Positions 14,501-64,000 are shown, numbered from the stretch's first letter. The stretch: DNA of 64,000 bases from Bugula neritina (GCA_964035545.1 OZ037766.1:32850773-32914772), one strand, 5' to 3'. Notes: generated by a model from the sequence alone, not told the origin. Numbers and translations: made by a program.

Positions 14501-16287
14501 CTGTGATGCGTGTGAACACGAGAACTGTACACATCCTGCGCTGAACCTTCACACTCGACCACTGATAGGCAGTTTTGGAATTCTCGTTCAGCCTTATGAT
14601 AAATCCCAGCTGGTCGAATGTAAAAGTAGGTTGTTCATAATGAATAAGCATCTTTACTATTAATTCTCACTAGAACTCTGTAATATTAATAACTAAACTA
14701 ACCATCTAATCTAAAAGGTCATCAGTCTAAATAATTGGTATTGTAATTGCTGTAATGCTCATGGCGACTAAGGACAGGGAAATTTGTTTAGTCTCGTGTT
14801 TAGTTCAAATTGTTGGCAACCAGAAACAACATATTTTACTTCAATTGATAACTTGTTTAAGTTGTGTGTGTACATCTGTTTCAGCAACCAACCAGCAGGA
14901 TTGTGGTGGAATACTGGATGATTTGGCCACCTGTGGGCATGGAGAGTTCCTTCAATACCAGACATCCACTTGTGAAACCATCTGTCCCAGGAGTTACGTA
15001 TTACAGGAAGGGTTTTGTGAGTTTATTGGACTGGATGCTGTGTGCACGAATTATGTGGAAGCAGACGTATACAGTGAGGTCATATTTGCTGACAATTCGA
15101 CCAATCAGCTTCACAGTAAAACATTTATGGCTCTTCGAGACGGCCCAACTGTTTGCTACAACTGTACAAACCTTTTAGCTATAACTGCCACTACAATGGA
15201 TTTTGAAATTACTGGAAATGATGAAATTAGGTATAAAAACAATTTAGTGTCCGCCAACCTTGTGTACAAAGTAGATAGTGTCAACTATTTTGTCTGTATT
15301 GATCAAGTGACCGAAACAGTAACCACCGAGGTTGTGTACCCCGTTGAAGTTTTCATCACCAATTTGTTCCTCTCCATATCTATCGTGAGCCTTCTCCTTT
15401 ACTTTGTGGCTTATCTGATGTTTGATCGCTTGAGAAACGTGCCGGGCAAGATTGTAGCTGGAAATATGATGAGTCTTTTCTTTGCTTACCTCTTTTTCCT
15501 ACTTAGACATGTTCCTGGTCTGGAAGAAACTGCTGGATGTATCGTCATAGGAATACTAATCAACTATTTCTTTCTAGCTTCTTTCGTCTTCAACATCATC
15601 TACGCCTGTTTCATAGTTCATTCACTGGACTTTATCGACTTTGAATCAAACGTGAACAAATGGACAGCAGTAAAGATGTGGGCGGTTGGATTACTCACGC
15701 CATTAGTAGTTATCATCCCTGGAGTTGTAATGGACAATGTCGTTAACGTAGAGTCCAACGCTGCCCTATACCAACCCAACTACGGTGGAAAGCAGTGTTT
15801 CATTGAAGGAGCCTATGGTAGACTGTTATTCTTTATTGCCCCGATTGGAGTCTGCCTCTTTTTAGCTGTCTGTCTCTACCTGGCAATTATACTTAAACTA
15901 ATTCAAGTCGCAAAGCAAACTAGTCAAGTCCGTTCGAATCATTCAGAAAAAATAACTATAGCTATTAAACTGTTGATAGTTCTGGGGTTCAACTGGGTGT
16001 TTGCTTTAGTCGCATCCATTGAGCAACAGCGAATCGCTACTTTCATCTTTATAGTGACTTGTACTTTGCAAGGATTCTTTGGTTTTGTCGTGTTTATATG
16101 TAACAAGGCCACCCTCAATGACATTAAAAGAAAATATACGAAAAAGGGCAGTCTTCAGTTCTCCTGTGACTCATCTGCAAGGATAAGTACGAAGGAAACC
16201 GCAACTGCTCAGCTAAAGAATAATACGTTGAGTAAGATGGAGAGCTCAAAGGCGCTTTTAAAGACAGGTGAAGAGGTCTCGGTATGA
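11526..16287 (+). CDS. Methuselah-like / secretin-family (7tm_2) GPCR with signal peptide, somatomedin-B-like and Cys-rich ectodomain; multi-exon
   Basis: Exons ~11526-11612 (MELNLRRLLFLLCLEIYISGSAHA, signal-like), 11912-12127 (SCSCLDSCVYVGLCCQD, SMB-like), 12446-12569, 13206-13431 (YKNIYCGLCN), 13696-13769, 14046-14215 (YRNKHCFQCN), 14487-14625 and 14885-16287. The last exon has 7 hydrophobic helices with LRNVPGK, NYFFLASF and CTLQGFFGF motifs. Phases are consistent across GT-AG introns. Confidence 0.85.
12782..13137. repeat. 12-bp intronic minisatellite (GTACACACAGTA)n, ~30 copies
   Basis: Direct tandem array; explains the spurious VVHT/CTTV ORFs. Confidence 0.95.
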
Positions 16288-46200: not shown

Positions 46201-49200
46201 TATGAACTTTGACATCAAACAGTTCGACTCATGCTCACTATTGGTTAGTTCTAATTACTGGGTATAGATGAATTGACTGAAAGCTGATTGGCTATGTACT
46301 GGAAGCTGATTGGCTATGTACTGGAAGCTGACTGAATACTGAAAGCTGATTAGCTACGTACTTGTATTTGAACAGAGGTGATTGTTTGGCTGCTGACGTG
46401 TCTACAGGCGGCTGGCATGGAATTCAATCTCTGTTTTTCTCTTGAGTTCGACTTTTGAGAAAGAGAAGGCAACTTAGAAATCTAAAAATATATAGTTATT
46501 ATCAGCACAGCAGGTCACGAGACTTCACCTTTAACCTTTAACCTTTGCCACAAAAGCTAATAGTTAACAGACACAATTTAAATAAATTAAGATATGTTGA
46601 AATACTTTTTTTAGTTGAAAATTTTGTTACAGTTGAAATTTAGCATAATTTGCAGGAAATTTCTTTTAGATATTTCTTAAGTCATAGAAAAGTATAATTA
46701 AAACCTGAAGTTGTTTAGACAGAAGATATTGCTTGTAAAGTAGATAATATTATGTACAGCTGCTGTCTAAAGAAAGAACTTTCACTGATGATTATTATCA
46801 GAAGTCTACCTTCTGCTTTGTTGCTGTTCTTCTTAAAGTGCGAGAGTTACTAGATGCGGGAATAAGAGATGGAGAGGAAGCTCTGTCAGGCAGTACAGAT
46901 CTTTTGATTGGTGGTAATAGAGAGTAGTGATTCAAATCTACCTTAAACATACGAGAGTATTACTAGAGAGTAGTGATTCAAGTCTACCTTAAACATACGA
47001 GAGTATTACTAGAGAGTAGGGATTCAAATCTACCTTAAACATACGAGAGTATTACTAGAGAGTAGGGATTCAAATCTACCTTAAACATACGAGAGTATTA
47101 CTAGAGAGTAGTGATTCAAATCTACCTAAACCTTCGAGAGCATCAATAGTATAGTTATAGTAAAAGCTATGAAATAGCTTTTGTTTAATTCTGAATGTAA
47201 ATGTGTTGCTCCAACTGGAATTCAAACCCAGACCTCCGGTTTGCAATCAGCCGAGCTAACCCTTACACCACAGGGCCTACAGAATTCCCAACAACACTAA
47301 ACACAACAATTTATTAGAAGCAAACCTGATACTTTCAACTCATCAATCCTGCTTTCACTGGCATTTTCTTTTTCTTTAGCGACATTTGACTCTTCCCTAG
47401 CGTAGATTAAACTCTGTTTCTCTTCATTGGGTGTGAGTGGAGGGTTGATGTACCAGGCGTAGTCAACTTTAGCTGACTCTACAACCTCCACCTCACTAAA
47501 TGCAGCACAAACCAATCTATAGTAAGACATTCTGTACCAGTCACAAATATCTCCTAATATTGCCTAATATGCCTGCACATTAAATAGCTATTAAACTCTG
47601 CAAGTGCATGGCCACAGTAACTAAAAAATTTAAACTAAATAATTGCTATAGCAGTAAAAATGGAGTTCTAACAGAAAAAATCTTTAGGAGTATTTTGTTA
47701 ATTTTTTGTAAGCAATTGGTATGAAGATGGGATCAGCTGACAATATATAGGTCACAGTATATACTTGCTTTCGGTTATTTAACGCAGATGTAAATAGACG
47801 GCAGGAGTTGATTGGCACACTTGTTGATAAATGCTGCCCTTTAAAATATCCTTGAAATGAAGGTTCTTCAGCTGTAGAAAGTCTATAGTCGGTAACCTGC
47901 AACGGTTTACACGAGTATCACAAGATTTACTTCTATTAATCAAGATTTTTGCACATTGTTAGTATCAAGCAAATATGCATACATTTTTTAAAATGATTAG
48001 AGAAAGTCAATGCATAAAAAAAGCGAGTTTTGGAATGAAACAAGGTGGTGCTAAAACCGCCTTACTTTACTGCCGTAGAGAAAATCTGAAAAGCGATTAG
48101 ATTCCTCCAGTAAAGTTTTGCTGTTGTGATTTTCTTCCGCCATTTTAGAATAACTCATCCTGCACGACTCCATGGTTGAGATGCCATGTGGGTCAAATGT
48201 CATCACCAACTTGACTGGTTCCTGTAAAACACTGATGTCTAGAGAATGAATTCATTAATTATGCTATAGGTTATATCCTATTCGGTATTTTACTCATATA
48301 CCACTAAGAATGGTAGCTGTTGTCAACATTTACCTGCCGAAGATTCAAATCTTCAAAATTCTCTTTTTGGGAACTTTGTTGGGACTCCACTATAGTTAAT
48401 GACGAGTGTGGAAATTCCGCAGCTGCACTATGCGCTGCTCCCTGAATCACTCGACTTACAAAGTTGGATGCTATTTGATCTTCGAATGAGTTTTGGGAAT
48501 TTTCTCTGTTCTCTGAGTTGTCAGCAGTTGCTTGGTCAGCAGTCTCTGGTGATGAATCTTGTAGTTGTTCTTCTGGCAGCGCAACTCTCTCTAAAAGATC
48601 CTCTTTAGTCTCAACAGCTGCCGCATCCCTTGGTATTTCTTCATTCATTAGTCTTATACCTGTGTTTATGAAGCCAGGGTTCTTCGTCGCCATTTCGACT
48701 GCTATATTTGATGCTGCGAAACTTATCAGCATGTCTATGAAGCTTGGTATTACTCGCTCGTTGAACTGAACCTTAGTGTGATCATGCCTTGATTTATCTG
48801 TTTTCTTCTGCTGCTGACTCAACACATCCATAGCCTCAGGACCAACTGGTTGTTGCGTCGGTATAAACCTTTGGGAGACATTAGAGCTAAGCCCCTCAAC
48901 TAAAGCTGAAGTAGCGTCACTACCTCCGCTGCTACTTGTACTTTCTGCAGGAGATTTTATGGTTGCAGACACAAGAGTTTTTGGTGAAACAGATTCTAAC
49001 AAAATATTTTCTGCTGTATAAGAATTATCAGATGGCTTATCTGCAGAGAGAGAGTTGATGTTACTACCGGCATCTTCCATTGAATCTTCATCAAGTTCTG
49101 TGGTAGATTTGAGGCCGTAATCAGGTTGTATTAAGTTGGTATTGGATAAAACTTCTCGCTCTAAATCGTGTTGCTGGTGCTCAAGGATCTGTTGTATATA

Positions 49201-51605
49201 GTCTTGTACATTAGTGCTAAGAGTCTTAGCATCCTTGTCTTGTGTCCTCGGTGACTCTATCTGGTGCACAGAACTCGGCACAGAAAGACTAATGCTTCCG
49301 GAAGATTCCTTGGCCAACACTTCTGATGAAACTCTGTCAGATTCCTCAACTGCCTCTGTGACAATTATGTTGGAAACGACTGCACTATTTGCCCGAGCCT
49401 CGTGGTGCGAGTGAACATCCGTTTTGACATCTGAGCGAGTTTTCCTAGCTTTAGTTTTAGGAGTTTCCAGCCACTGCTTGTAAGAAGTCGGCTCAGCTTC
49501 TGGTGTGAATCCTCTAGAGTCAGTTTTAGCTGCTAGAGTTTGAGACTGGGATCTGTAACTGCTAGCCTGAGAGGTAGATCTATGTGTTCTGATAGATTGA
49601 GGGGAGGTGAGACGACTCCGAGGTGATCTCACTCTGGTAGAGCTGCTATGGCTAACTGGAGAGGGTGTCTTTACCATCTGCGTTACTCTCCAGTTGGCGT
49701 GTCCTTCTTGTAAACTCTACAACACATCATGGCTCATCTCTTCAGCACAATGTCTCAAACTGTTAACATTATTTTCTGTAAAAATTTTGTTAGTTTGTGA
49801 TCTCATGATTTCTCATTTCAGTAATTTGTATGCCCTTAGAAGTTAAAAGCAGACGGCTGTGATGTTGAAAAAAGTGCAGTTTCATCTGCAAGCTTGTTTC
49901 GTTTCTTCCTGTTATTAGGTAGTTATATTGTTACACGTTTCTTCCTGTTATTAGGTAGTTATATTGTTACAAACCTTCGCATGTTTCGCATGACTATCAG
50001 AAGACCCGAGTGTGTCAGAGAGAGAGACAGATGGTAGAGTGACCGCATTAGTGCTGTGTAGTAGAAGACTGTGGTCACCTATAAGCTCGTTGGGGCTGGC
50101 AAAATGTGGCTCCCTCAACAGCTACAAGTAACAAGCATGCAATCACAGTCTAAACTTGTGAAAATGTCTTATGTAGCTTTATAACACACTGGTATATAAA
50201 TGCAATGTGTATATATCATATACATAAAGCAGAGTAATATATTATATATCATATGTATAAAGCTGAATAATATATTATATGACATATGTATTACAAATGA
50301 GTAATATATATTATATGTCATATCTATTACAAATGAGTAATATATATGACATATACATACAGCTGAGTAATATATTGATACACAGCTACCTGTGGAGAAG
50401 GGGTGAGAGACAACAATTTGAGTTCCACTTCACTACCGGAAGACAGGGGAGTACAACTCCTTGTACACAGGTTATTGGGGAGATGACTCACATCTTTATG
50501 TATTTTGTTTACCTTGAAAACATGTAAGTGTTCTAATGATAACAATCATTATATGTATTGAATCATTATACTGGATATAAAACCAGCAATGTGGTTGCAG
50601 AAGATGTAACACAAAAAGCTGACATGGAAAAAATTGGCAAGGTCTATTAGATATCCTATTAGATATCGGTTAAAGTTTTCTTGTTAGATTGCATGAAGGT
50701 ACTGCATATGAATTATATGAAATAGTAAAGGAAGCGTAAAACTAAATGATTTGTTTGAAAGTTTGAATTAAGTTGAAGGAAAATGAAGCTCAAAGAGCAT
50801 TCCGTTTCACTCTGATGAATATTTCTGGCCAATAAACTCTATCAACTTAGTTGCTGCTGCGCTATTAAACAAAATGGTGGCTATAACTTTTCCTCTATTT
50901 CAGTTTTCTTATAATACGCATTTATTTAATCAAATTGAATAGTTTATTCAAAGAATTCAAAAAATTTATAACCTTGAGTTTTAATTTGAGTAAAAGTTTT
51001 TGTTCAAGTTGCAAATTATTTTCATTTTTTTAAAAAAAAACAACATTTAAATGAGTGAATAGCAGTACTTTATGGCTAACAAGTAAATCATGAATGGAAT
51101 GAAATATTAAAAAAATTAATATATAAAGCTCTCTATGCTCTACGGATGACACAATATTGTTACATAAGATATGTTGAAAACAAAACTATAGTATATATCA
51201 GGCAACATGCTTTCTACAGCATCCAAATAATACCTCTGCAGTTGGCTTAGCATTTCAATACAATTGGAGCAGAAATTTTAACAATTGATATTTTTTCTCA
51301 AGTTTACTATTTTTAATTCGAGTTGTAAAACTTCATTATCAACTTATTTTACATATAAGTAGATAATTAAGTATATATACACAATTGACAATACATTAGT
51401 CATAGTAGATAAGTAAGTATATATATACACTATATTAGTCACATTAGACAAGTAAGTACATAATGTTTATAGTAGATATAGGTAAGTAAAGGTAAGTATA
51501 ATACATTCATATACCAACGTTTCGAAAGTCTTTTGAAATTTCTCCTTTTTCATTATTTTCTTCCGCAAAGTTTGGGGAAGACGAACGAAAGGGAATTGTA
51601 GTCAT
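43220..51605 (-). CDS. Large uncharacterised protein (Ser-rich disordered N-terminal half, globular C-terminal region); ~14 exons
   Basis: First exon 51605-51515 (MTTIPFRSSSPNFAEENNEKG) is phase-compatible with 50533-50388. Further open exons at ~50122-49975, 49776-48333 (contains the 457-aa ORF), 48222-48066, 47897-47763, ~47555-47332, 46942-46810, ~46480-46362, 46175-45886, 45030-44875, 44363-44270, 44171-43950 and 43768-43648, then 43330-43220 (ALSKALDIVLSII*). Internal boundaries are approximate. Confidence 0.7.
43360..43626. repeat. 21-bp intronic minisatellite
   Basis: TTATTAGACCACAGTCTATA(G/A), ~12 copies. Confidence 0.9.
44378..44860. repeat. 37-bp intronic minisatellite, ~13 copies
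   Basis: GATACAGTATACAAGTATTACATAGATAACCTACCTG. Confidence 0.95.
46918..47127. repeat. 46-bp tandem repeat spanning an intron/exon acceptor
   Basis: AGAGAGTAGTGATTCAAATCTACCTTAAACATACGAGAGTATTACT, ~4.5 copies. Confidence 0.92.
47205..47277 (-). pseudogene. tRNA-like sequence (Cys GCA anticodon-like): tRNA pseudogene or tRNA-derived SINE head
   Basis: Minus strand reads GGCCCTGTGGTGTAAGGGTTAGCTCGGCTGATTGCAAACCGGAGGTCTGGGTTTGAATTCCAGTTGGAGC: A box TGGTGTAAGGG, B box GGTTTGAATTCC, imperfect acceptor stem. Confidence 0.6.
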
Positions 51606-52746: not shown

Positions 52747-53621
52747 ATAACTACATTTATGGTGTTTGAATAGCACTGATAACTATAATATTATTAGTAA
52801 ACAGCAATAATAATATATTATGATTATATAAAATATCTTTACACAAATAATGAGTATTTTAGTTGCACCAATGAGAGTAGTAACAAGTCAATGTGACACA
52901 CTTTCATATAACAGTACAGCATTATATCAGCAGATAGACTAACTTCCACAGCTGCACATGTTAGTAGAGTAAGGCTGGACAAAATCAGCTCTCTCACTGC
53001 AGTTGAAAAGTTGCATGTTGGTTGCTCAGTTTAACTCTTACAAGTGTTTCACAGAAATCAGAAAGCTTAGAACACTCCGCCATTGTTTGTAGCTGTTCAT
53101 CCTTAGTGATGGTACAACAAATATATTGTATCATTTTCTATGAGAACAAAACTCCTTCCTTCTGATTTGTGGCAGATTAAAACCAGGGAGCAGCAGGAGT
53201 TGTCTTTCTTTAGCTGATATATATACATTTCTTTGTTTGCGTGGAATTAACCTGAGCTAGAAGTTATATAGCTAGTTGATGAAATAGCAAATTTTCTTTG
53301 CTAGTGAAAGAAAGAAGGAATTCCTTTATATTCCTATTATATTGCTACGTACTAGCTATAGAAAATATTGTTTGAATCAATGCTTGTTTAAATAAAAAGA
53401 ATGAACATAATGTAATTGGCCTACATGTGAGGCTATTATGTATCTCGTACTTATGGGAAAATAAATTTTCCAAATGGTTCATGTAAACATGAAATAAAAA
53501 GAACATTACCTCATAGCTATTTATAGGTATAACAATGTACGTTGATGTGATTGGTTAATTACGTTGAATTACACTGTTGTGGTATATATAGTAATGGTAT
53601 AGTAATTCACTTTCAAATATC

Positions 53622-54386
53622 ATGGAAGCAGCAATGTCAAAGCAGCAAATTAGTGAATTTAACTTATCAGATAACCACAACATTTTCGGCATGTTACAGA
53701 AATTAAAGGACTTTGGTATTCAACAAAGAAGACAAGATGTGAAGCAAGTCATGGTGGTTGGAGAATGTATAGTCTGTAGCAATGATCAACTATTTTTATG
53801 TCCCAATTGGGAACTTTTCTTTAACAAAAAGTTCTCTGAATGTGACAACTCTGTACAACAATTCACTAGAAGATTATTTCCTGGTGTACAAGACCAACAT
53901 ACGGTTCACACAGAGCTGATCTGGTTATCAAAAGGTCGTCAACTGAGATCAGACCGTCTGTACATCATATACTCGTACTACATTCCATGTGCTGGTAATC
54001 ATCACAGCATCATTTCCTGTGCGGAGTGGTTGACAAAGTTTGCAGGTCTACGCAACGTCAATGATAGTAATAATACTAACATTACTAACAATTATGATAA
54101 TAAAAGCTTTGATGCAATCAATGATGTTAGTACTGATAATAATAATTTTTATTATTATAATAGCATCAATATAATCATTGGTTACGATAAGGTGTTTAAA
54201 CATAGCTGTGAGGCTAAATGTTTTTCAATATTTGATGAAAGAAAAGTACCCTTATATGATGTAACCAAACGCTTTATACGTGGAAAAGAGAATGTACATG
54301 TTCAGCTTGAAAAAGCGAAATTAGCACGACAACTTCTAGAATTACAAATGTTAAACAATGGCAAACAACGATTTCTCTCCGTCTAA
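53622..54386 (+). CDS. AID/APOBEC-like zinc-dependent deaminase, paralog 1 (uninterrupted ORF, 254 aa)
   Basis: VHTE (53907-53915), then x23, then IYSYYIPCAGNHHSIISCAE; downstream IIIGY strand; TATATA at 53583. Clear paralog at 58513. Confidence 0.78.
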   Translation: MEAAMSKQQISEFNLSDNHNIFGMLQKLKDFGIQQRRQDVKQVMVVGECIVCSNDQLFLCPNWELFFNKKFSECDNSVQQFTRRLFPGVQDQHTVHTELIWLSKGRQLRSDRLYIIYSYYIPCAGNHHSIISCAEWLTKFAGLRNVNDSNNTNITNNYDNKSFDAINDVSTDNNNFYYYNSINIIIGYDKVFKHSCEAKCFSIFDERKVPLYDVTKRFIRGKENVHVQLEKAKLARQLLELQMLNNGKQRFLSV

Positions 54387-54560
54387 CGTCTTCAACGACC
54401 ACCCATTGCCTTGTGGGTTAAGCTGTAAATATAGCTAAAGGCTAAGAGAGAAAACCCTAACAGAAAACACGGGTGGCCCTTGGGCAAGACCTAGTACCCG
54501 GTAGCCTCCCTAGCTGGGGTCACAGCTAACCCTTCTGACATTGCGGAGCTCAACTACTAT
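54360..54560 (+). mobile_element. Probable retroelement (LINE/SINE) 5'-UTR fragment with structured RNA
   Basis: GC-richer island with a second partial copy at 56365-56420 (GTCTTCAA.GAC..CCATTGCCTTGTGGGTTAAGCT) and internal complementarities. Confidence 0.45.
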
Positions 54561-54861
54561 TAGTATCATCCTGATAAGACGCTACTTAGAGTTTAGCTAT
54601 ACGTAGCTATTTCAACACCAAGTGGACATCAAGGAGTAGCAGTCACTATATAACCATCAGCCACTAACCAGTCAGGAACCTATATGAAAGAGATGAACAG
54701 ACTTTGAAAACATACGGATACCATTCTGACAATTAAACGCTATACGTGTCTATTTTGACACGAAAACAGTTATATGTGACTCGATTGTATCTCTGGATAG
54801 GAAATATAACACAAATACTAATTTATAGTGTCAGTTTATATTATAGTTCTTCAATATAAAC

Positions 54862-55070
54862 AGTATTTATATGTATATGTGTTTTTGTCTACAATATTAT
54901 ACAATATTTATATGTATATGTGTTTTTGTCTACAATATTATACAATATTTATATGTATATGTGTTTTTGTCTACAATATTATACAATATTTATATGTATA
55001 TGTGTTTTTGTCTACAATATTATACAATATTTATATGTATATGTGTTTTTGTCTACAATATTATACAATT
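54862..55070. repeat. 41-bp tandem repeat x5
   Basis: ATTTATATGTATATGTGTTTTTGTCTACAATATTATACAAT. Confidence 0.92.
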
Positions 55071-57293
55071 TTTAAACAATTGACATTTGTCGAACTACAC
55101 CGACTTGTCTTAACTCAATAAGTATTTTTTCTAAGCAACTTTTTGTTGATGTATTTAACAAAAATGCTAATTTTTAATATACTATATACTTTTAATATAC
55201 TTTTAAATTATAATATTATATAAAATGAATCTTATTTCCTTGACTTTTTGTGTGAAGCATTTACTCAATAAATTTTTAGAGTGTAATTTGAATTCATGTG
55301 CTTTTCACATCGAGTTTATAGTTATAAAACATCTCAAGAAAGATCTAGAATCATGAGTCAACTTTTGGAAATTGGAAATTCCAAAACGTAGTTTTGACAC
55401 AGACTAATAATACAGCAGGAATAGTTAAAACGATAAAGCTTGTATGTTGCAATAGATTATTTCTTTTTACAAAAGAATGGCTTATAAAAATCAATAGGTG
55501 ATAATGTTTCACAATATATCAGTAGTTAGTAAAGACAGCTGATAGTAAACATTTAAAGTAAATTAAGTTAATACTGATGATGGTCAGGTAAAGTATAACT
55601 GAAAGTTTCTGTGGGGAATATTGTATAACAAATAATATATAGAGCATAACTCTAAATAGTATAAAACATAACTACAAATAGCATTTTATAGAACATAACC
55701 CAAAGCAAACAAAAGTATGGCTGAATGATAATTTATAATTATCACAGTGAAGAATCATCTATTAGTTTATGACATTAAATAATGTGCTGCTGTGAATATT
55801 TACATTGTTAGACTGTTGATATTTAATTTGAACCAAGATAAGGAGTGAAATGATAATATGCAACACATCTTTTTCATATGAGTTTAATACTTTAGGCAAC
55901 TTTTATTGTATGTTATGGAAAATCTTTTTACTGCTGTGCTCTGTGGCAACATGGCTTTGTTTACTTAAGGAGTTCACTTCAATCAATTCATTTGAATGCC
56001 TACTATACTACATGTATATAAATGCATCATAGATAATACATAGCTATCAGTAACGCCACTTCTTCATCTGAACACAGCAGACCCTTTCTCTAAACTCTAA
56101 AGTTATTCATGCATATATAAATTATATACAAAGTTATTGTAGAAACCTTATTCTTCTATAAAAATATTTTACTGGAAAATGCGAAATTAGCAACAAAGCA
56201 TTTTGAATTACAAATTTTAAATAATAACTTACAATATTTCTATGGTATAACATCATAATAATATATTATAATAATAGAATACAATTTAACAAATTTATGA
56301 ATATGACTATAATAATATAGTGTAATATAAATATAAATGTTGGAGTTGATAATAGAGAGTACTGGTTAGCCGTCTTCAAGGACACTCCATTGCCTTGTGG
56401 GTTAAGCTATAAGTATGGCAGCATATCTGTTTCTAGTTAAGTTAAATCAGTGATACTAAAATGTTATTTTTATGCTTTAATTTATAGAACTTCAAATATT
56501 GTATAGTTTTTCAGTATAAACAGTGTTTATTTGTGTTTTTGTCTACAATAATATTATTATACAGTTTTTGAACAGTTGAAGATAATTTCTATTTACAAAA
56601 GAATGGCTTATAAAAATCAATAGGTGATTATAATGTTTCACAAAATATCAGTAGTTAGTAAAGACAGCTGATAGTAAACGTTTAAAGGTAAATTATGTTA
56701 AAACTGATGATGGTCAGCCAAAGCATAACTGAAAGTTTCCATGGGGAATATTGTATAACAAATAATATATAGAACATAACTCTAAATGGCAAATAGAACA
56801 TAACTCCGAATAACATTTTATAGAGCATAACTCCAAATAGCATGTTATAGAAAATAACTCCAAAAGCATGTCATAGAGCATAACTCCAAACAACATTTTA
56901 TAGAGCATAACTGAAAGGAAATAAAAATATCGCAGATTGATAATGTATAAATATTAGTTCAATGCCAACCTCAAGAGAGATGTAATACCTATTTAAAGAT
57001 GTGCTCCTGTGAAAACTTTCATCTGCAGACTGTTGGTATATTATTATAGTCATATGTTTGTTGTTATTTCAACTTATTACCACTAAATGCACTTTCTTGA
57101 AACAAGATGAGTGATAAAAAACCAGTTTGAAATAATGTTGTGCAACCCTTCACATGGGTTCAATATTTCAAATAAATTATATTGCGTGTTATAACTGAGC
57201 GCTTTCGTAACATAACAATCTCACTTTCAATAGGGAAGATATAAAACTGCACAAGGATATAATGATATGATAAAAGAGTAAAATATATGCAAT

Positions 57294-57890
57294 GTAAGTA
57301 CTCCTGTACTCTGTATGTAAGTACTCCTGTACTCTGTATGTAAGTACTCCTGTACTCTGTATGTAAGTACTCCTGTACTCTGTATGTAAGTACTCCTGTA
57401 CTCTGTATGTAAGTACTCCTGTACTCTGTGTGTAAGTACTCCTGTACTCTGTATGTAAGTACTCCTGTACTCTGTGTGTAAGTACTCTTGTACTCTGTGT
57501 GTAAGTACTCCTGTACTCTGTATGTAAGTACTCCTGTACTCTGTGTGTAAGTACTCCTGTACTCTGTATGTAAGTACTCCTGTACTCTGTATGTAAGTAC
57601 TCCTGTACTCTGTGTGTAAGTACTCCTGTACTCTGTATGTAAGTACTCCTGTACTCTGTGTGTAAGTACTCTTGTACTCTGTGTGTAAGTACTCCTGTAC
57701 TCTGTATGTAAGTACTCCTGTACTCTGTATGTATAAGTACTCCTGTACTCTGTATGTAAGTACTCTTGTACTCTGTATGTAAGTACTCCTGTACTCTGTA
57801 TGTAAGTACTCCTGTACTCTGTGTGTAAGTACTCCTGTACTCTGTATGTAAGTACTCCTGTACTCTGTGTGTAAGTACTCTTGTACTATG
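57294..57890. repeat. 23-bp minisatellite, ~26 copies, each beginning with GTAAGT
   Basis: GTAAGTACTCCTGTACTCTGT(A/G)T; explains the spurious 234-aa minus-strand ORF. Confidence 0.95.
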
Positions 57891-58512
57891 TTAAGTTTTG
57901 TTTTAAGCAATATACTGACTTTGTTAGACAATTAGATAGAGGAGTTTGTTTCTCTTGTTGCTAAGATACAGTCATGCAACTATATTCCGTGTTAATGATG
58001 GGACAACTCTTTAAGAAGTTGTTATGAACATATTGAGTCATACTTCATATCATATTATTATAATATAATATAATATATTCATATAATATCTTTCAAGTAT
58101 AACTTTTATTTCTTATCAAATTAAAAAGTTGCAGAAACTTTTAACATGCGAATATTGCAACAATTAGGACACCCACACTATCAAATAATACAATACAGTA
58201 CAATATAGTGCAGATCATATCACAGTCGTACCATGTCACAACATGCCTTATCAGAGACATCATATCATGTTTGAGCATCATTCACTGAGACACCCATTAG
58301 TCAATACACGAACCAACTGGGTGTAGCAAGTTATAAGTTGTCAGTAAATGGAGCACCCACAGCCTCTCATCTTTTGAATCACACAGCTATAGCATGCTAT
58401 AAGACTATTGGTTTAATAAAATAAGATAGGCGGAGCTTACATTAGGCAGCCAATAGTTAATGAGTGTAGAAGTTAGATATTTAAGGAGCTACCTACCAGG
58501 CCCTCTTTACAG

Positions 58513-59070
58513 ATGGAAATCCAAAACAGAGAACAAACATCCTTTCAGTTAGTTCGCACTCTTGCTACTATACTTTTAAAAACAGCAGACCTCGAAGCTG
58601 CAGATTCTTCCAACAGGGGGCAAGTTATGATTGTATATCAGTTTAAAATAAAGAGTGAAAGAGGCAGTGCCTTCTATACCTTAGATTTAGATTCATTTAA
58701 AAAGAGTACATTTAAAAATATACTAATTAGAGATGAATTTTCTGAATCATTGAAATCTAAAATAAAACAACGCTTTCCTAATTTAAAAAATAAAGAAAAA
58801 GTTCATACTGAAATCCAATTGGTGTGGGACGATAACATCAGTGTTCCCAGCAACAGTGTGCTTGTAATATACTCTTATTATATTCCCTGTGCTGGGAATA
58901 GGTGCAGTTTTGTATCATGCGCCGAGGAATTGGTTAAGTATGCAAAAAAAATAAATTTAAAAATAATAATTGGTTACCATAAATTTCATCGTAATACAGA
59001 TAACTACAAATCCCTAGAAATATTAAAAAATGGAAATATAGAAGTATTTCATTTAGCTGATTTAAATTAG
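58513..59070 (+). CDS. AID/APOBEC-like zinc-dependent deaminase, paralog 2 (185 aa)
   Basis: VHTE (58804-58812), then x24, then IYSYYIPCAGNRCSFVSCAE...IIIGY. The ATG follows a strong acceptor CCCTCTTTACAG, and AATAAA signals lie just downstream. Confidence 0.8.
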   Translation: MEIQNREQTSFQLVRTLATILLKTADLEAADSSNRGQVMIVYQFKIKSERGSAFYTLDLDSFKKSTFKNILIRDEFSESLKSKIKQRFPNLKNKEKVHTEIQLVWDDNISVPSNSVLVIYSYYIPCAGNRCSFVSCAEELVKYAKKINLKIIIGYHKFHRNTDNYKSLEILKNGNIEVFHLADLN

Positions 59071-59294
59071 ATTAAATCTATAATAAAATAAATAAATGTA
59101 ATAAAAATACAGTAAATAATTAATTTAAATTGAACAATAGTTCCTCATCACTTGCTCCTCATTTTTTTTCTCAATTATTTAAACAAAATATGTTTAAATA
59201 ATTGACTGCTGCTTTGAAGTCAGAAAGGTTGTTTGTTTGCTGACTTGGATTTAAAAGGACTTTTACAGTACACTGCTATTGTAAGAGTCTCCAT

Positions 59295-59612
59295 CTGTCG
59301 TGGAACATAGGCCTAGTGGGGAACCGCCATTTAAAAGGAGGTTTACATTACATATGTGCAGTATGTATTGTGAAATTATCTATCTATAGTGGAACATAGG
59401 CCTACTGGGGAACGTCACCACTTAGAAGGGAGCTTACCATGCATATGTACAGTATGTATTGTGAAAGTCACTATCTAAAGTGGAGTATAGCCCTAGTGGG
59501 AAACGTTGCCACTTAGAAGAAAGTTTATAGTACATATGTACAGTGTGTATTATGAAATTTACTATCTAAAGTGGAGCATATACCTACTGGGGAACCGCCA
59601 CTAAAAAGGGTA
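59295..59612. repeat. ~90-bp diverged tandem repeat, ~4 copies
   Basis: GTGGAACATAGGCCTA(G/C)TGGGGAAC..CCAC/TTTA(G/A)AAGG recurs at ~59300, 59389, 59480 and 59571. Confidence 0.8.
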
Positions 59613-59689
59613 GTGCGCCAATGTACCAACCTCAGAGGTGGTGTGGAATCGGTACACAGGTCATATAGCCTGATGAATAGCAATGATAC

Positions 59690-60298
59690 TTTAGTTGTGA
59701 CACCTTAGTTATGACACCTTAGTTGTGAGACCTTAGTTGTGACACCTTAGTTGTGACACCTCAGCTATGACACCTTAGTTATGACACTTAGTTGCGATAC
59801 CTTAGCTGTGACACCTTAGTTATGACATCTTAGTTGTGATACCTTAGCTGTGACACCTTAGTTGTGACACCTTAGTTGTGACACCTCAGCTATGACACCT
59901 TAGTTATGACACATAGTTGTGACACCTTAGTGTGACACCTTAGTTGTGACACCTTAGTTATGACATCTTAGTTGTGATACCTTAGCTGTGACACCTTAGT
60001 TATGACATCTTAGTTGTGATACCTTAGCTGTGACACCTTAGCTGTGACACCTTAGTTGTGACACTTTAGTGGTGACACCTCAGGTGTGACACCTCAGTTA
60101 TGACACCTTAGTTGTGACACCTCAGCTATGACACCTTAGTTATGACACCTTAGTGGTGACACCTTAGTTGTGACACCTTAGTTGTGACAACACCTTAGTT
60201 GTGACACCTTAGTTTTGACACCTTAGTTGTGACACCCTAATTGTGACACCTTAGTGTGACACCTTAGTGTGACACCTCAGTTGTGACACCTTAGTTGG
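59690..60298. repeat. 14-bp minisatellite, ~43 copies
   Basis: GACACCTTAGTTGT. Confidence 0.95.
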
Positions 60299-60679
60299 AC
60301 GGCAGATACTGGGGAAATGCTCTTACAACACATCTATGCTGGCCGACAGCTTTGCTCTCTCAAATTCCAATGTAAAGTGGTAGAATTCTGTCTCATATTA
60401 TTATGTCTTAAGTTTTTGTTTTGGTATTTAGCTTTTGAAATATTCAACAACAAACAAATAATATTATGCTGTAAATATCCGCATGCTGAAAGAAAACCTT
60501 AAATGTCCATACTTTCCTTACCAACCTTTGCCTGAGTACTTTCTATGAAAAGTAGTTAACTTTTATTGTGTTTGATGAGTGGCTACCTCTAGACAAATGT
60601 CAAATCAAATAGCACACTATATTCTTTTGCTGAGTAGATATTGCCGACATAGTTTATTTACAGTAAAGTATATAATATA

Positions 60680-61697
60680 GGGGAGAGTGTGGGGCTAGTT
60701 GGACCACATGCTCTAAATTTCCTTCTTTAAATCGTTACACTATTTTACCTCCTTTACTTAAGAGGGTGTTAGGTGAGCTACCTGCGCAGATGTCTTGAAA
60801 TATATGGAATCAAAACAGAAGTTTTCAGGTGAGTATTTTTCACATTTTTTGCATAAAAATTGAGCAAATTAAGAGTTCATTTGTTCATAAAAAGTTGCAT
60901 AGATTCCCAAATGTCATTAGCCCAGTCAAGTAATTTCAGGCATGTGTATTGTCAACATGATTTCAAAGTTGAGCAATTCAAATATTCTACAAATGTTTTT
61001 AGAATGATGAAAAACTGCATATGAAAAGCAAACAGGGAACCAAATAAGGAGAGCCTAACTACAGCAATGAATATGGTAAAGCAAGGCAGTGGGGTAAATC
61101 AACCACCATTAAGTTGAGATCCCTCAAACAGCCCTCTTATATGAAAGTAGATTATGGTCAGCCATGCTATGTATTTTCTGATGTCATATGAGAGGACCCA
61201 CTTCATTATATTTGTATAAACTTGTTGAAGAATAAATTATGAAAAGACAACTTTTAAAAGTTTTCCTATACCTGCTGCTGTTTGGGTTTTGAAGCATCTT
61301 CTGTATTGCCTATCTTTGAGGTGTTAAATGGTTACAATGACATCACATCCAGAGCTTCTGTTATTTGTTTATGCCCATTTAATTTTATTTTTCATGTTTT
61401 TTTTAATAAATCACTTTTCAGTTTGCTAAATGGTAAAAACAATTTAGTTATGAGATGATGACACTGATTCAGCTTTCCCACAGTGCGATTCAAATTGCCT
61501 CCTACCGGGCTGGTTGTGCCAAAAAATGGGCTCTATCTTGTTGAATAAGTGTTTATGCATTTGATTTCAAAGGACAAAGACAGCAACACATGACTGACTT
61601 TCATGGTGTTGGTCTTTAGATTAGCAATACATTTCTTCAAAACCTATAATGCTTAAAAACGAAATCTTTGGTTTAATTAACTAGCCCCATCCTCCTC
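60680..61697 (+). mobile_element. Decayed pogo/Tigger-like (Tc1/mariner superfamily) DNA transposon
   Basis: Imperfect TIRs GGGGAGAGTGTGGGGCTAGTT / AACTAGCCCCATCCTCCTC, both flanked by TA. Internal relic NKESLTTAMNMVKQGSGVNQ...EIPQTAL (~61040-61137) resembles a pipsqueak HTH. Confidence 0.65.
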
Positions 61698-61758
61698 TAC
61701 ACTACAGCTGTTATGATAATCATAATGTGATTAATATAAATTATATAAGTGTAACTTA

Positions 61759-64000
61759 TAAGGTCACGGTAAAACTGATAATAACAAAATATTTGAAAAA
61801 TCAATAAAGTAATATAAAATAAGTCATAACTTTCCACAGTAATAATCTACCAGTCATATTTAACAGCACTCAACAATAATATTCTGGAAATAAAGTAAAT
61901 TGTGTTTCCATATAACAACTCTATACTAAAAAAATATATATGGTATACAAATTTGATAAAGAAATTGTCATAGCTGTTTAACTTGTATATATCTTTGGTT
62001 TGAATTCAAGATATAAAAGCAGTAAATTTAGAGATGAACCTTATAGCTTCTAATACCTCAACAAATAAGACACATGTATTATTTATATTACACCACTGCA
62101 GTGTTGGAGTGTCACTATCAGTAGAGATACAATATTGTGTTCAAGTTGGTCTGTATTATGCTGATATATGCCCCTTATATATTTCAACCATACCCACAGT
62201 AACTTGATGAGCTTGTCCACATGAAATGGGCTAAACTCTAATGCTTTACTGTCTATGATAGAGTATAACTGAAAGTGAATAAAGGCCTCTCTGAGTGATG
62301 ATGTGTGACTATTCAGTGAAGAAGCATGTATTAGTTCAGTGACATTCAATAGTGTGCTGCTGTGAATATTTACATTGTTAGACTGTTGATATTTAATTAG
62401 TCATATGTTTGTCTTTACTTCAACATGTGATTTCTAAATGCACTTTTTTGAGACAAGATGAGGAGTGAAATAAAAATTTTTTGCAACATGAATTTTTTTG
62501 TGCAATCAATTTCTCTTTCATATGGATTCAATATTTTAGGCAACTTATATTGTATGTTACAAAAAACATTTTTACTGCTCTATTCTGTGGGAACATGTTC
62601 ACTTAATCAGTTCACTTCAAACAATTCATTTGAATGCTGACTATGTAAATGCATCATAAATAATACATAATGCCACTTTTCTATGTCAACACAGCAGACC
62701 CTTTCTCTAAACCCACAAGTTATCCATGCATATAGACTATACAAGTTTAATATAGAAACCTGATTCTTCTATAGAAAATCTATTAGTTTAGCAGCTGTCT
62801 CTGTGGCAACATGGCGTTGTTTACTTACTGTGTCAATAGAGTCACTTTAATCAATCTATTTGAATGCTAACTTATAGGTTATGTAAAGTCATTGTATAGA
62901 TTATTGATTCTATCTTTTGCTTTATTACTGTACTTAGTGTAGCCACACTATTGATGTAAAGCATTTTCATCCACTTGAATTACAAAAAAAACTTTTGAAT
63001 GCCTTCCTACCAGTCTGCTGCTGCTGCTTGAGTTTTAAAGCGTCTTCTGCATCTCCCTATCTTTGAAATGTTAAATAGTTACAATGACATATCACATTTA
63101 GAGTTTCTGTTACTTGTTTATGCCCATTTAATTTTATTTTTCATGCTTTCTTTGCTAATCTTTAATAAATCATTTTTTAATTTGTAAGGTCACGGTAAAA
63201 CTAATAATAACAAAAGATTTAAAAGATCAATAAAGTTATAAAAAATAACTCATAACTTTCCACAGTAATAATCTACATGCAGTCATATTTAAAAGCACTC
63301 AACAATGATATTCCAGAAATAAAGTAAATTGTTTTTGCGTAACAACTCGTCACCACAGTTAATATCTGTAGCATGGAAACTTGATAAAGAAATTGTCATA
63401 TAGCTATTAAACTTGCATATATCATTGGTGTGAATTCAGGATAAAAGCAGTAAATTTAGAGATGAACCTTATAGCTTCTAATACCTCAACAAATAAGTCA
63501 CATGTATTATTTATATTACACCACTGCAGTGTTGGGGTGTCACTGTCAGTAGAGATACAATATTGTGTCAAGTTGATCTGTATTATGCTAATATATGCCC
63601 CTTATATTTCAACCATACCCACAGTAACTTGATGAGCTTGTCCACATGAAATGGGCTAAACTCTAATGTTTTACTGTCTATTATAGAGCATAACTGAAAT
63701 TGAATAAAGGTCTCTCTGTGTGATGATGTGTGACTATTCAGTGAAGAAGCATGTATTAGTTCAGTGACATTCAATAGTGTGCTGCTGTGAATATTTACAT
63801 TGTTAGACTGTTGATATTTAATTAGTCATATGTTTGTCTTTACTTCAACATGTGATTTCTAAATGCACTTTTTTGAGACAAGATGAGGAGTGAAATAAAA
63901 ATTTTTTGCAACATGAATTTTTTTGTGCAATCAATTTCTCTTTCATATGGATTCAATATTTTAGGCAACTTATATTGTATGTTACAAAAAAAAAACATTT
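61759..64000. repeat. Direct segmental duplication, ~1.43-kb offset (61759-62575 vs 63185-64000, runs off the window)
   Basis: TAAGGTCACGGTAAAACT at 61759 and 63185; matching spurious ORFs start at 62349 and 63774. Confidence 0.92.

Follow-up and report, generated by a model that had tools for sequence, protein, structure and literature searches.

Mutators of the AID/APOBEC-like deaminase (AAD) type are central in vertebrate immunity, and to our knowledge few AADs from outside the vertebrates have been tested (in sea urchin and brachiopod). Lineage-specific AAD expansions with variable substrate loops were described by Krishnan et al. (2018, PMC5889660), where SNAD1-3 are reported only from vertebrates and SNAD4 only from sponges, and bryozoans are unmentioned in the main text. 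Invertebrate AADs with mutator activity and pathogen-induced expression have also been published (PMC5956068). Here we describe a pair of AAD-like genes, open reading frames (ORF) 1 and 2, located in a 64,000-nucleotide stretch of the genome of a bugulid bryozoan (Bugula neritina, GCA_964035545.1), hereafter the window, which corresponds to C2:32850773-32914772 of the 216-Mb assembly. We consider it likely that the two genes encode intracellular zinc-dependent polynucleotide cytosine deaminases of the AAD superfamily, and that they are host genes used in genetic conflict. The two genes are as follows.

53622-54386, plus strand, stop codon included: ORF1 (A-type, copy A1), an intronless AID/APOBEC-like deaminase gene of 254 amino acids (aa).
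58513-59070, plus strand, stop codon included: ORF2 (B-type, copy B1), an intronless AID/APOBEC-like deaminase gene of 185 aa.

According to the ORF listing, both frames are intact and lie on the same strand, separated by 4126 bp. The two proteins were aligned by BLASTP with an expect value (E) of 2e-16 and 42% identity across a 71-residue core, which begins shortly before H-T-E and reaches the helix that follows the second cysteine. Their translations have in common QVM(V/I)V, FSE, FP, VHTE, IYSYYIPCAGN..S..SCAE.L.K(F/Y)A and IIIGY.K. A preliminary description of this DNA had reported two same-strand ORFs 4.1 kb apart that share these motifs and stay intact in about 70% AT DNA; we recovered the positions and every motif, and measured a GC content of 0.30-0.34 around the ORFs (29-42% in the window). 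Both frames are far beyond chance, because 200 block-shuffles of the window gave on average 0.005 ATG-initiated ORFs of at least 185 aa per shuffle, and 254 aa was reached in none. The tandem pair of the preliminary description does exist, but it is not isolated: the two genes make up half of a four-gene cluster that arose by duplication, in a family of 15 loci. Exact-sequence look-ups of ORF1 and ORF2 returned no match. The single outside contig with ORF2, which may stem from RNA or from DNA, came from SRR32906201; its identity is 99.4%, and it stays collinear with the genome through 450 bp beyond the stop.

The signature H-x-E ... P-C-x9-C is kept in both proteins, with E98-x23-P122 in ORF1 and E100-x24-P125 in ORF2, at the following positions.

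53907-54020, plus strand: ORF1 catalytic core, with H96-T-E98 at 53907-53915, P122-C123 at 53985-53990 and C133 at 54018-54020.
58804-58920, plus strand: ORF2 catalytic core, with H98-T-E100 at 58804-58812, P125-C126 at 58885-58890 and C136 at 58918-58920.

These spacings, together with the PC-x9-C of both proteins, agree with the zinc signature H-x-E-x23-28-P-C...C that the preliminary description gave for the cytidine deaminase fold. The H, E, P, C and C residues were invariant in all 52 family members aligned. AlphaFold models were obtained with a predicted local distance difference test score (pLDDT) of 83.2 and a predicted template modelling score (pTM) of 0.81 for ORF1, and of 84.3 and 0.83, respectively, for ORF2. 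In the ORF1 model, the H/E pair opens a helix (97-102), a strand (113-120) leads into PC, and C133 opens the next helix (133-142); its C-terminal part comprises a strand (183-190), a helix (197-206) and a strand (211-213), and ends in one long helix. The ORF2 model starts with helix 1 (2-30), two strands (38-48 and 55-68) and an extra helix (78-87), and continues with H98-T-E100 at the start of helix 2 (99-105), strand 3 (115-123) and P125-C126. After a 9-residue loop, C136 opens helix 3 (136-146), which is followed by strand 4 (150-157), helix 4 (164-173) and strand 5 (177-180), and the protein stops 5 residues past strand 5. In a Foldseek comparison, a check suggested in the preliminary description and made here against the PDB, all 50 top matches of the ORF2 model were APOBEC3, APOBEC2 or APOBEC1 chains (best E 2.4e-6) and the top 35 matches of the ORF1 model were APOBEC3 or AID chains; a deaminase alpha/beta fold was present in both. 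Deaminase-fold chains also occupied 24 of the first 25 VIA-align rows. The prediction that both proteins adopt the cytidine-deaminase fold is thus secure at the level of the models.

Assignment to the AID/APOBEC subclass is supported by lines of evidence that converge but are weaker than those for the fold. The hallmarks that we used were those of PMC5889660: loop 3 opens with an Asn or another small polar residue that contacts the target base (N57 of APOBEC3A), and loop 7 opens with an aromatic residue, called AAD-unique there, that confines the pocket to a pyrimidine (Y130 of APOBEC3A). In our family, N69 directly follows strand 2 of ORF2 and was invariant in 16 out of 16 members, with at least 90% conservation among 52 and among 90 relatives. 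Y155, also invariant (16 out of 16), is the Tyr of the motif I-I-(G/V)-Y and occupies the strand-4/loop-7 junction; its proposed equivalence to Y130 is by sequence and secondary-structure position. The helix-4 topology (strand 4-helix 4-strand 5) was predicted in the models of both ORFs, and all language-model neighbours were AID/APOBEC-type clusters.

Neither ORF scored above the cut-off of a Pfam model. The highest-scoring Pfam model for ORF2 was APOBEC3 (PF18771; 21.8 bits vs a cut-off of 27), followed by Inv-AAD and XOO_2897-deam. Weak matches to APOBEC3, APOBEC_N, SNAD4, APOBEC2, Inv-AAD, NAD1 and APOBEC4 recurred among the family members scanned (16 + 10), and those outside the AID/APOBEC clan were isolated, single-member and chance-level. 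The best scores against their cut-offs were 21.8-22.6 vs 27 bits (APOBEC3 PF18771), 20.1 vs 27 (SNAD4), 20.1 vs 25 (APOBEC_N) and 13.3 vs 26.5 (Inv-AAD). ORF1 had no AAD Pfam match at E <=10, and none of the 16 + 10 members matched dCMP_cyt_deam_1 (PF00383) at E <=1. The preliminary description had pointed to APOBEC4/SNAD/NAD-type clades: a SNAD1-like relationship is the nearest by the transitive evidence given below, but APOBEC4 and NAD were not supported. In particular, APOBEC4 (PF18775) matched at E 0.012-0.087, NAD1 matched at E 0.011-0.018 for the long paralogs of C5 only, and loop 1 of the A/B alignment showed no conserved Cys/His cluster, unlike the metal-chelating insert of APOBEC4 (loops 1 and 3). 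Best hits to free-nucleotide deaminases, which would have spoken against an AAD identity, were not encountered, with none to dCMP_cyt_deam_1.

Our profile search of the genome recovered 15 family loci, 5 of which are A/B copies.

A1 and B1 in the window, A2 and B2 19.5 kb downstream, and a dispersed A3 on C5: the A/B loci of the family.
C5:14063838-14110792 (L006-L013): tandem array of eight long paralogs, whose open frames span about 430-480 aa; one gene is broken.
C5:12739318-12741027 (L019) and C5:12759258-12760433 (L020): two further genes with 601- and 428-aa open frames, respectively, and PC-x15-C.

In the copies of the C5 array, a hydrophobic N-terminus that resembles a signal peptide precedes the deaminase domain (with PC-x13-C), which is followed by a C-terminal domain of about 200 aa with conserved cysteines, for which no Pfam match was found. 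The start Met is apparently on a separate upstream exon in most of these copies; copy L013 contains two TAA stops, and its HTE is replaced by HTK. The only named relative was KAF6021720.1 (a 'hypothetical protein' of Bugula neritina), to which L019 and L020 are 83% and 68% identical, respectively; 30 look-ups of relative clusters returned that one kind of name only, 'hypothetical protein'. Close homologues were also found on contigs from Joint Genome Institute (JGI) samples, 71-88% identical to the locus across long collinear stretches.

The deaminase-domain profile gave 90 matches among 1.84 billion representative proteins. Nearly all of these 90 relatives carry H-(T/G)-E ... (Y/F)S.(Y/F)IPC ... 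C, very few match Pfam AAD models, and many have a length of 400-460 aa and a hydrophobic stretch at the N-terminus. The longest uncharged hydrophobic N-terminal run was 8-17 residues in most of the 400-460-aa relatives and 0 in all 11 proteins of the A/B clade. The absence of a signal peptide in both ORFs, noted from the outset, therefore holds, their N-termini being hydrophilic, and it is informative since most relatives have one. One relative of 439 aa with a signal peptide (P0087) passes the Pfam SNAD1 model (PF18744; 29.2 vs 25 bits), and its nearest ESM clusters were a molluscan 427-aa 'hypothetical protein' and then vertebrate SNAD1/SNAD2. The same molluscan cluster was the best shape match of the ORF2 model, with a template modelling (TM) score of 0.65. 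The A/B clade (profile A5) and the secreted clade (profile A6) were aligned by hhalign with 99.4% probability (E 1e-21), while ORF1 and ORF2 themselves gave no score on the SNAD1 model.

In a maximum-likelihood tree of 59 domains, rooted by midpoint only, the 11 short proteins without signal peptide, from this genome and related samples, grouped together with a Shimodaira-Hasegawa-like approximate likelihood ratio test (SH-aLRT) support of 90. This group sits within a 22-row clade (SH-aLRT 98) whose other members are mostly of the secreted type. The usual form of the family is a secreted protein of about 430 aa, composed of signal peptide, deaminase domain and Cys-bearing C-terminal domain, and on these comparisons ORF1 and ORF2 read as short intracellular derivatives of a SNAD-related, mostly secreted and apparently lophotrochozoan family. 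The A/B pair is a new clade or a variant of a known enzyme kind, lineage-specific AAD expansions being already known in lophotrochozoans. A transposon or repeat origin was considered and rejected, given 5 A/B copies in the genome, 2 copies of the 3' flank of ORF1 and no Rfam or tRNA match.

Selection on the A- and B-type genes was measured as the ratio of nonsynonymous to synonymous divergence (omega, dN/dS) by the method of Nei and Gojobori (NG86), with bootstrap confidence intervals (CI).

A-type, whole gene: omega 0.41, CI 0.25-0.71, P(omega>=1)=0.
B-type, whole gene: omega 0.69-0.71, CI reaching 1.
B-type, catalytic core (helix 2, strand 3, loop 5, helix 3 and strand 4): omega 0.3-0.6.
B-type, remainder of the protein, in pairs with unsaturated synonymous divergence (dS): omega about 1.

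The A-type genes are under purifying selection, and in the B-type genes the core is constrained and the rest is near neutral. Positional entropy in ORF2 was lowest in the core (helix 2, 0.84; strand 3, 0.58; loop 5, 0.76; overall, 1.31) and peaked in helix 1, strand 2, loop 3 and loop 7. The same entropy pattern is shown by conflict-driven AAD clades, and the self-editing clades (AID, APOBEC2 and APOBEC4) have low sequence entropy and stable copy number (PMC5889660). Family copies that are just 28-47% identical keep all the catalytic and pocket residues. Copy number differs between close taxa, since we found at least 5 B-type genes in samples of a related bryozoan (JGI 3300003318 and 3300002729; contigs L014, L021, L022, L024 and L025; proteins P0002, P0003, P0004, P0009 and P0013) vs 2 here; the nearest to ORF2 was P0013, with about 56% identity. 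The preliminary description had called the cluster lineage-specific and fast-evolving and had proposed checks of copy number and dN/dS; the census of 15 loci, the tree and the omega values of 0.41 (A) and 0.69-0.71 (B) bear it out.

The pair belongs to a larger module that was duplicated in tandem, and orthologous copies occur in the same gene order in the related bryozoan.

53300-62200, plus strand: A-B module, with its tandem duplicate about 19.5 kb downstream at C2:32923362-32931772, about 9 kb past the window end.

When the two modules were compared (BLASTN and MAFFT), their flanks were 88-98% identical, the A coding sequences 86-88%, and the block 57900-59300, which contains ORF2, 54-80%. 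This ORF2 block is a divergence island relative to the B2 module (L018), and the B coding sequence, with a synonymous divergence of 0.57, differs much more than the flanks do. This contrast would result either from homogenisation of the flanks through gene conversion or from the exchange of a B cassette. The second A gene, A2 (L017:9141-9773), has an in-frame TAA at codon 37 after a conserved start, where ORF1 has CAA, and what remains is an N-terminally truncated ORF of 167-171 aa without helix 1; judging from its reading frame, A2 is probably a pseudogene.

An ankyrin-repeat caspase gene was also observed 3.5-7.6 kb past the window end (L017:3555-7575, minus strand; C2:32918327-32922347). 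It consists of a 711-aa ankyrin exon followed by caspase-like exons and stands head-to-head with A2, about 1.7 kb apart. A Peptidase_C14 fragment occupies the same position upstream of the A-type gene on the related-taxon contig L016. A tblastn search of the window found no caspase or ankyrin partner or remnant.

Several elements within and around the two ORFs were identified, the TATA-like element of ORF1 and the AATAAA hexamer being read from the sequence.

53583-53590, plus strand: TATA-like element TATATATA, about 32 bp 5' of the ORF1 start codon.
54057-54164, plus strand: Asn-rich low-complexity insertion V146-S181, in-frame, 108 nt, specific to ORF1.
54398-54618, plus strand: GC-rich 3' flank of ORF1, a candidate 3' untranslated region (UTR), from the copy-number search of the genome.
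58380-58512, plus strand: putative B-type promoter region, with a CCAAT box at 58450-58454 and TATTTAAG at 58478-58485.
59082-59087, plus strand: AATAAA, a polyadenylation-signal-like hexamer 12 nt past the ORF2 stop.

The ATG of ORF1 at 53622 is kept in all 4 A-type copies, and a similar CATATATAC element was found at the same place as TATATATA in A2, A3 and the related taxon; these elements would presumably serve as TATA boxes. Across the 133 bp 5' of the B-type ATG, B1, B2 and the related-taxon B gene show 81-88% identity to one another, vs about 66-75% for the coding sequence, and this region would act as a promoter, its CCAAT and TATA-like elements lying 60 and 30 bp 5' of the ORF2 ATG, at core-promoter distance. 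A pyrimidine-rich ...CTTTACAG directly precedes this ATG and is kept in B2 and the related taxon. The AATAAA at 59082 is presumably used for polyadenylation. The 3' flank of ORF1 at 54398-54618 has a single other copy in the genome, directly 3' of A3 on C5 (87% identical), and is absent from A2; no match to Rfam or tRNA models was found, and it may be a conserved 3' UTR element. Neither A2 nor A3 nor the related-taxon A-type contig L016 carries the 108-nt insertion of ORF1, which was modelled as a low-confidence loop between helix 3 and strand 4 (pLDDT about 47-60), on the side opposite to the active site. We rejected an intron at this position: no frame-keeping GT..AG pair exists, and the close relatives simply lack the 108 nt. 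Finally, tblastn of the window detected no remnant near the ORFs of the signal peptide or C-terminal domain of the relatives.

Four large tandem-repeat arrays flank the deaminase genes, at 57292-57891 (23 bp x 26 copies), 59691-60297 (14 bp x 43.5), 54848-55074 (41 bp x 5.6) and 59300-59609 (91 bp x 3.5), and the 23-bp array yields a spurious 234-aa minus-strand ORF (57227-57931). Elsewhere in the window we observed a 510-aa single-exon ORF at 14755-16287 (plus strand) that matches the secretin-family G protein-coupled receptor model 7tm_2 (E 4e-16), and a 457-aa ORF at 48304-49677 (minus strand) that is Ser/Thr/Glu-rich, apparently disordered and has no Pfam match.

Zinc binding, specificity for cytosine in a polynucleotide, a location within the cell, transcription and a role in immunity would all be expected of the two proteins by analogy with their family. 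In ORF2 numbering, H98, C126 and C136 would hold the catalytic Zn2+ and E100 would shuttle the proton. Two invariant residues, N69 (where loop 3 begins) and Y155 (where strand 4 gives way to loop 7), would line the pocket that receives the flipped-out cytosine of a single-stranded polynucleotide, and the recognised sequence context would depend on helix 1, loop 3 and loop 7, all of them variable. The A and B forms, having apparently lost the signal peptide and the C-terminal domain, would act within the cell. Judging from APOBEC3 and from the AADs of sea urchin and brachiopod, the likeliest role would be to restrict viruses or retroelements through mutation.

Several observations weigh against this reading of ORF1 and ORF2 as intracellular AADs used in genetic conflict. 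The TM-scores of the ORF2 model to APOBECs are just 0.45-0.49, none of the family members scanned (16 + 10) reached a Pfam AAD gathering score, and PDB sequence searches with ORF2 and with the profiles labelled A1, A5 and A6 returned no significant match (the best were APOBEC3H/3G, E about 0.4). The B-type whole-gene omega (0.69-0.71) has a CI touching or passing 1, and omega outside the core is about 1; an Asn-rich, low-complexity stretch of 36 aa is inserted in ORF1, and F stands at position 76 of ORF2, where a near-invariant Cys is found in at least 90% of relatives. The premature TAA of A2 at codon 37 shows that decay is under way in the cluster, and one member of the C5 array is broken as well. 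This second set of points would also suit decaying or functionless duplicates of a birth-and-death family, which would still seem intact after having lost expression or activity. We nevertheless regard such decay of ORF1 and ORF2 as unlikely: both frames are intact in AT-rich DNA, with a chance expectation of about 0.005 per window, the catalytic and pocket residues are kept across copies 28-47% identical, omega amounts to 0.41 for the A-type genes (P(omega>=1)=0) and to 0.3-0.6 for the B-type core, and conservation of the putative B promoter, in which CCAAT and TATA-like elements occur, exceeds that of the B coding sequence. That same promoter points to regulated expression, as would be expected of active deaminases working on self nucleic acids rather than on parasites, through programmed mRNA editing or somatic diversification of a self locus. 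AID and APOBEC1 are AADs recruited to self targets, and PMC5889660 proposes that comparable recruitment may have occurred elsewhere in metazoa. We hold a self-directed function to be distinctly unlikely for this pair, as the substrate-side loops are its most variable parts, whereas self-editing clades are low-entropy and copy-stable (PMC5889660), and as related samples have at least 5 B genes vs 2 here; both patterns fit conflict-driven evolution.

An upstream exon that escaped our notice could supply a signal peptide, in which case ORF1 and ORF2 would be secreted like most of their relatives; these relatives do have one, apparently on a separate upstream exon in the C5 array, and the conserved pyrimidine-rich ...CTTTACAG before the ORF2 ATG could be a 3' splice site. 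Yet ATG is kept as the first codon in all A-type and B-type copies, the CCAAT/TATA-like elements stand 60/30 bp upstream, at core-promoter distance, a hydrophobic N-terminus is absent from all 11 A/B-clade proteins, the N-terminal helix is confidently modelled within the fold, and tblastn of the window found no remnant of a signal peptide or C-terminal domain; secretion by this route appears quite improbable. Housekeeping deaminases of free nucleotides or tRNA (dCMP/CMP deaminase, RibD or TadA/ADAT type) would share the same fold, and we judge this identity highly improbable. No family member matched dCMP_cyt_deam_1 or MafB19/TadA-type models at E <=1, the loop-7 position has an invariant aromatic residue where TadA has a small one, and the family is multi-copy, lineage-restricted and fast-evolving, with 90 representatives in 1.84 billion proteins, which is untypical of housekeeping enzymes.

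A bolder extension, which we find rather doubtful, would make ORF1 and ORF2 the intracellular descendants of a missing lophotrochozoan SNAD counterpart, the B gene a hyper-divergent cassette in a homogenised module, and the locus an animal 'defence island' together with the ankyrin-caspase gene. The B gene would then keep a conserved promoter and a constrained core beneath near-neutral or positively selected surfaces, and nucleic-acid mutagenesis would be coupled to a cell-death effector, the module standing beside the ankyrin-caspase gene in two taxa. If this were true, the 185-aa enzyme would be among the most compact natural AAD scaffolds for base editing. Independently of that extension, ORF2 is a candidate to be screened for base editing, with its 185 residues in a single exon, its unusual PC-x9-C loop 5 and its variable substrate loops.

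Among the known systems, the pair shares with SNAD1 (PF18744; Krishnan et al. 2018, PMC5889660) the core H-x-E and (Y/F)S.YIPC...C-A-E-E-L, and lineage-specific expansions occur in both groups. Unlike SNAD1, ORF1 and ORF2 have no signal peptide and no C-terminal Cys-bearing extension; the four-cysteine C-terminal extension that replaces helices 5 and 6 in SNAD1/2 was found in neither. The SNADs are vertebrate (1-3) or sponge (4) proteins, whereas the family to which the pair belongs is bryozoan and apparently molluscan. From APOBEC3/AID the pair differs by its low identity (10-18%), by loop 5 (PC-x9-C here vs PC-x2-4-C), by S-x-Y-I-P-C vs S-W-S-P-C, by an additional loop-3 helix (residues 78-87), by the absence of helices 5 and 6 in ORF2, and by TM-scores of about 0.45-0.49. 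The sea-urchin SpAIDL and Lingula AADs (PMC5956068) are likewise invertebrate, multi-copy AAD-like genes, and their published members, which show mutator activity and pathogen-inducible expression, served as the model for the function that we propose. The similarity of ORF2 to Inv-AAD (PF18785) is at chance level (13.3 bits vs 26.5, E 0.077), and the profile search returned a family separate from the invertebrate classical AADs, mostly without a Pfam AAD match. In contrast to the bacterial toxin deaminases (XOO_2897-like PF14440; DddA), both genes lie on an animal chromosome, show promoter elements of the eukaryotic type, and have neither toxin-delivery domains nor an immunity gene.

The locus adds the phylum Bryozoa, not in the main text of PMC5889660, with genes of a family that is missed by current Pfam models and appears in public records at most as 'hypothetical protein'. 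The family links short cytosolic to long secreted forms that reach the SNAD1 model, and it bears on the age of the separation of secreted from classical AADs, which may go back to the base of the animals, and on whether protostomes have secreted forms. Overall, it represents an incremental extension of the lineage-specific AAD expansions in lophotrochozoans.

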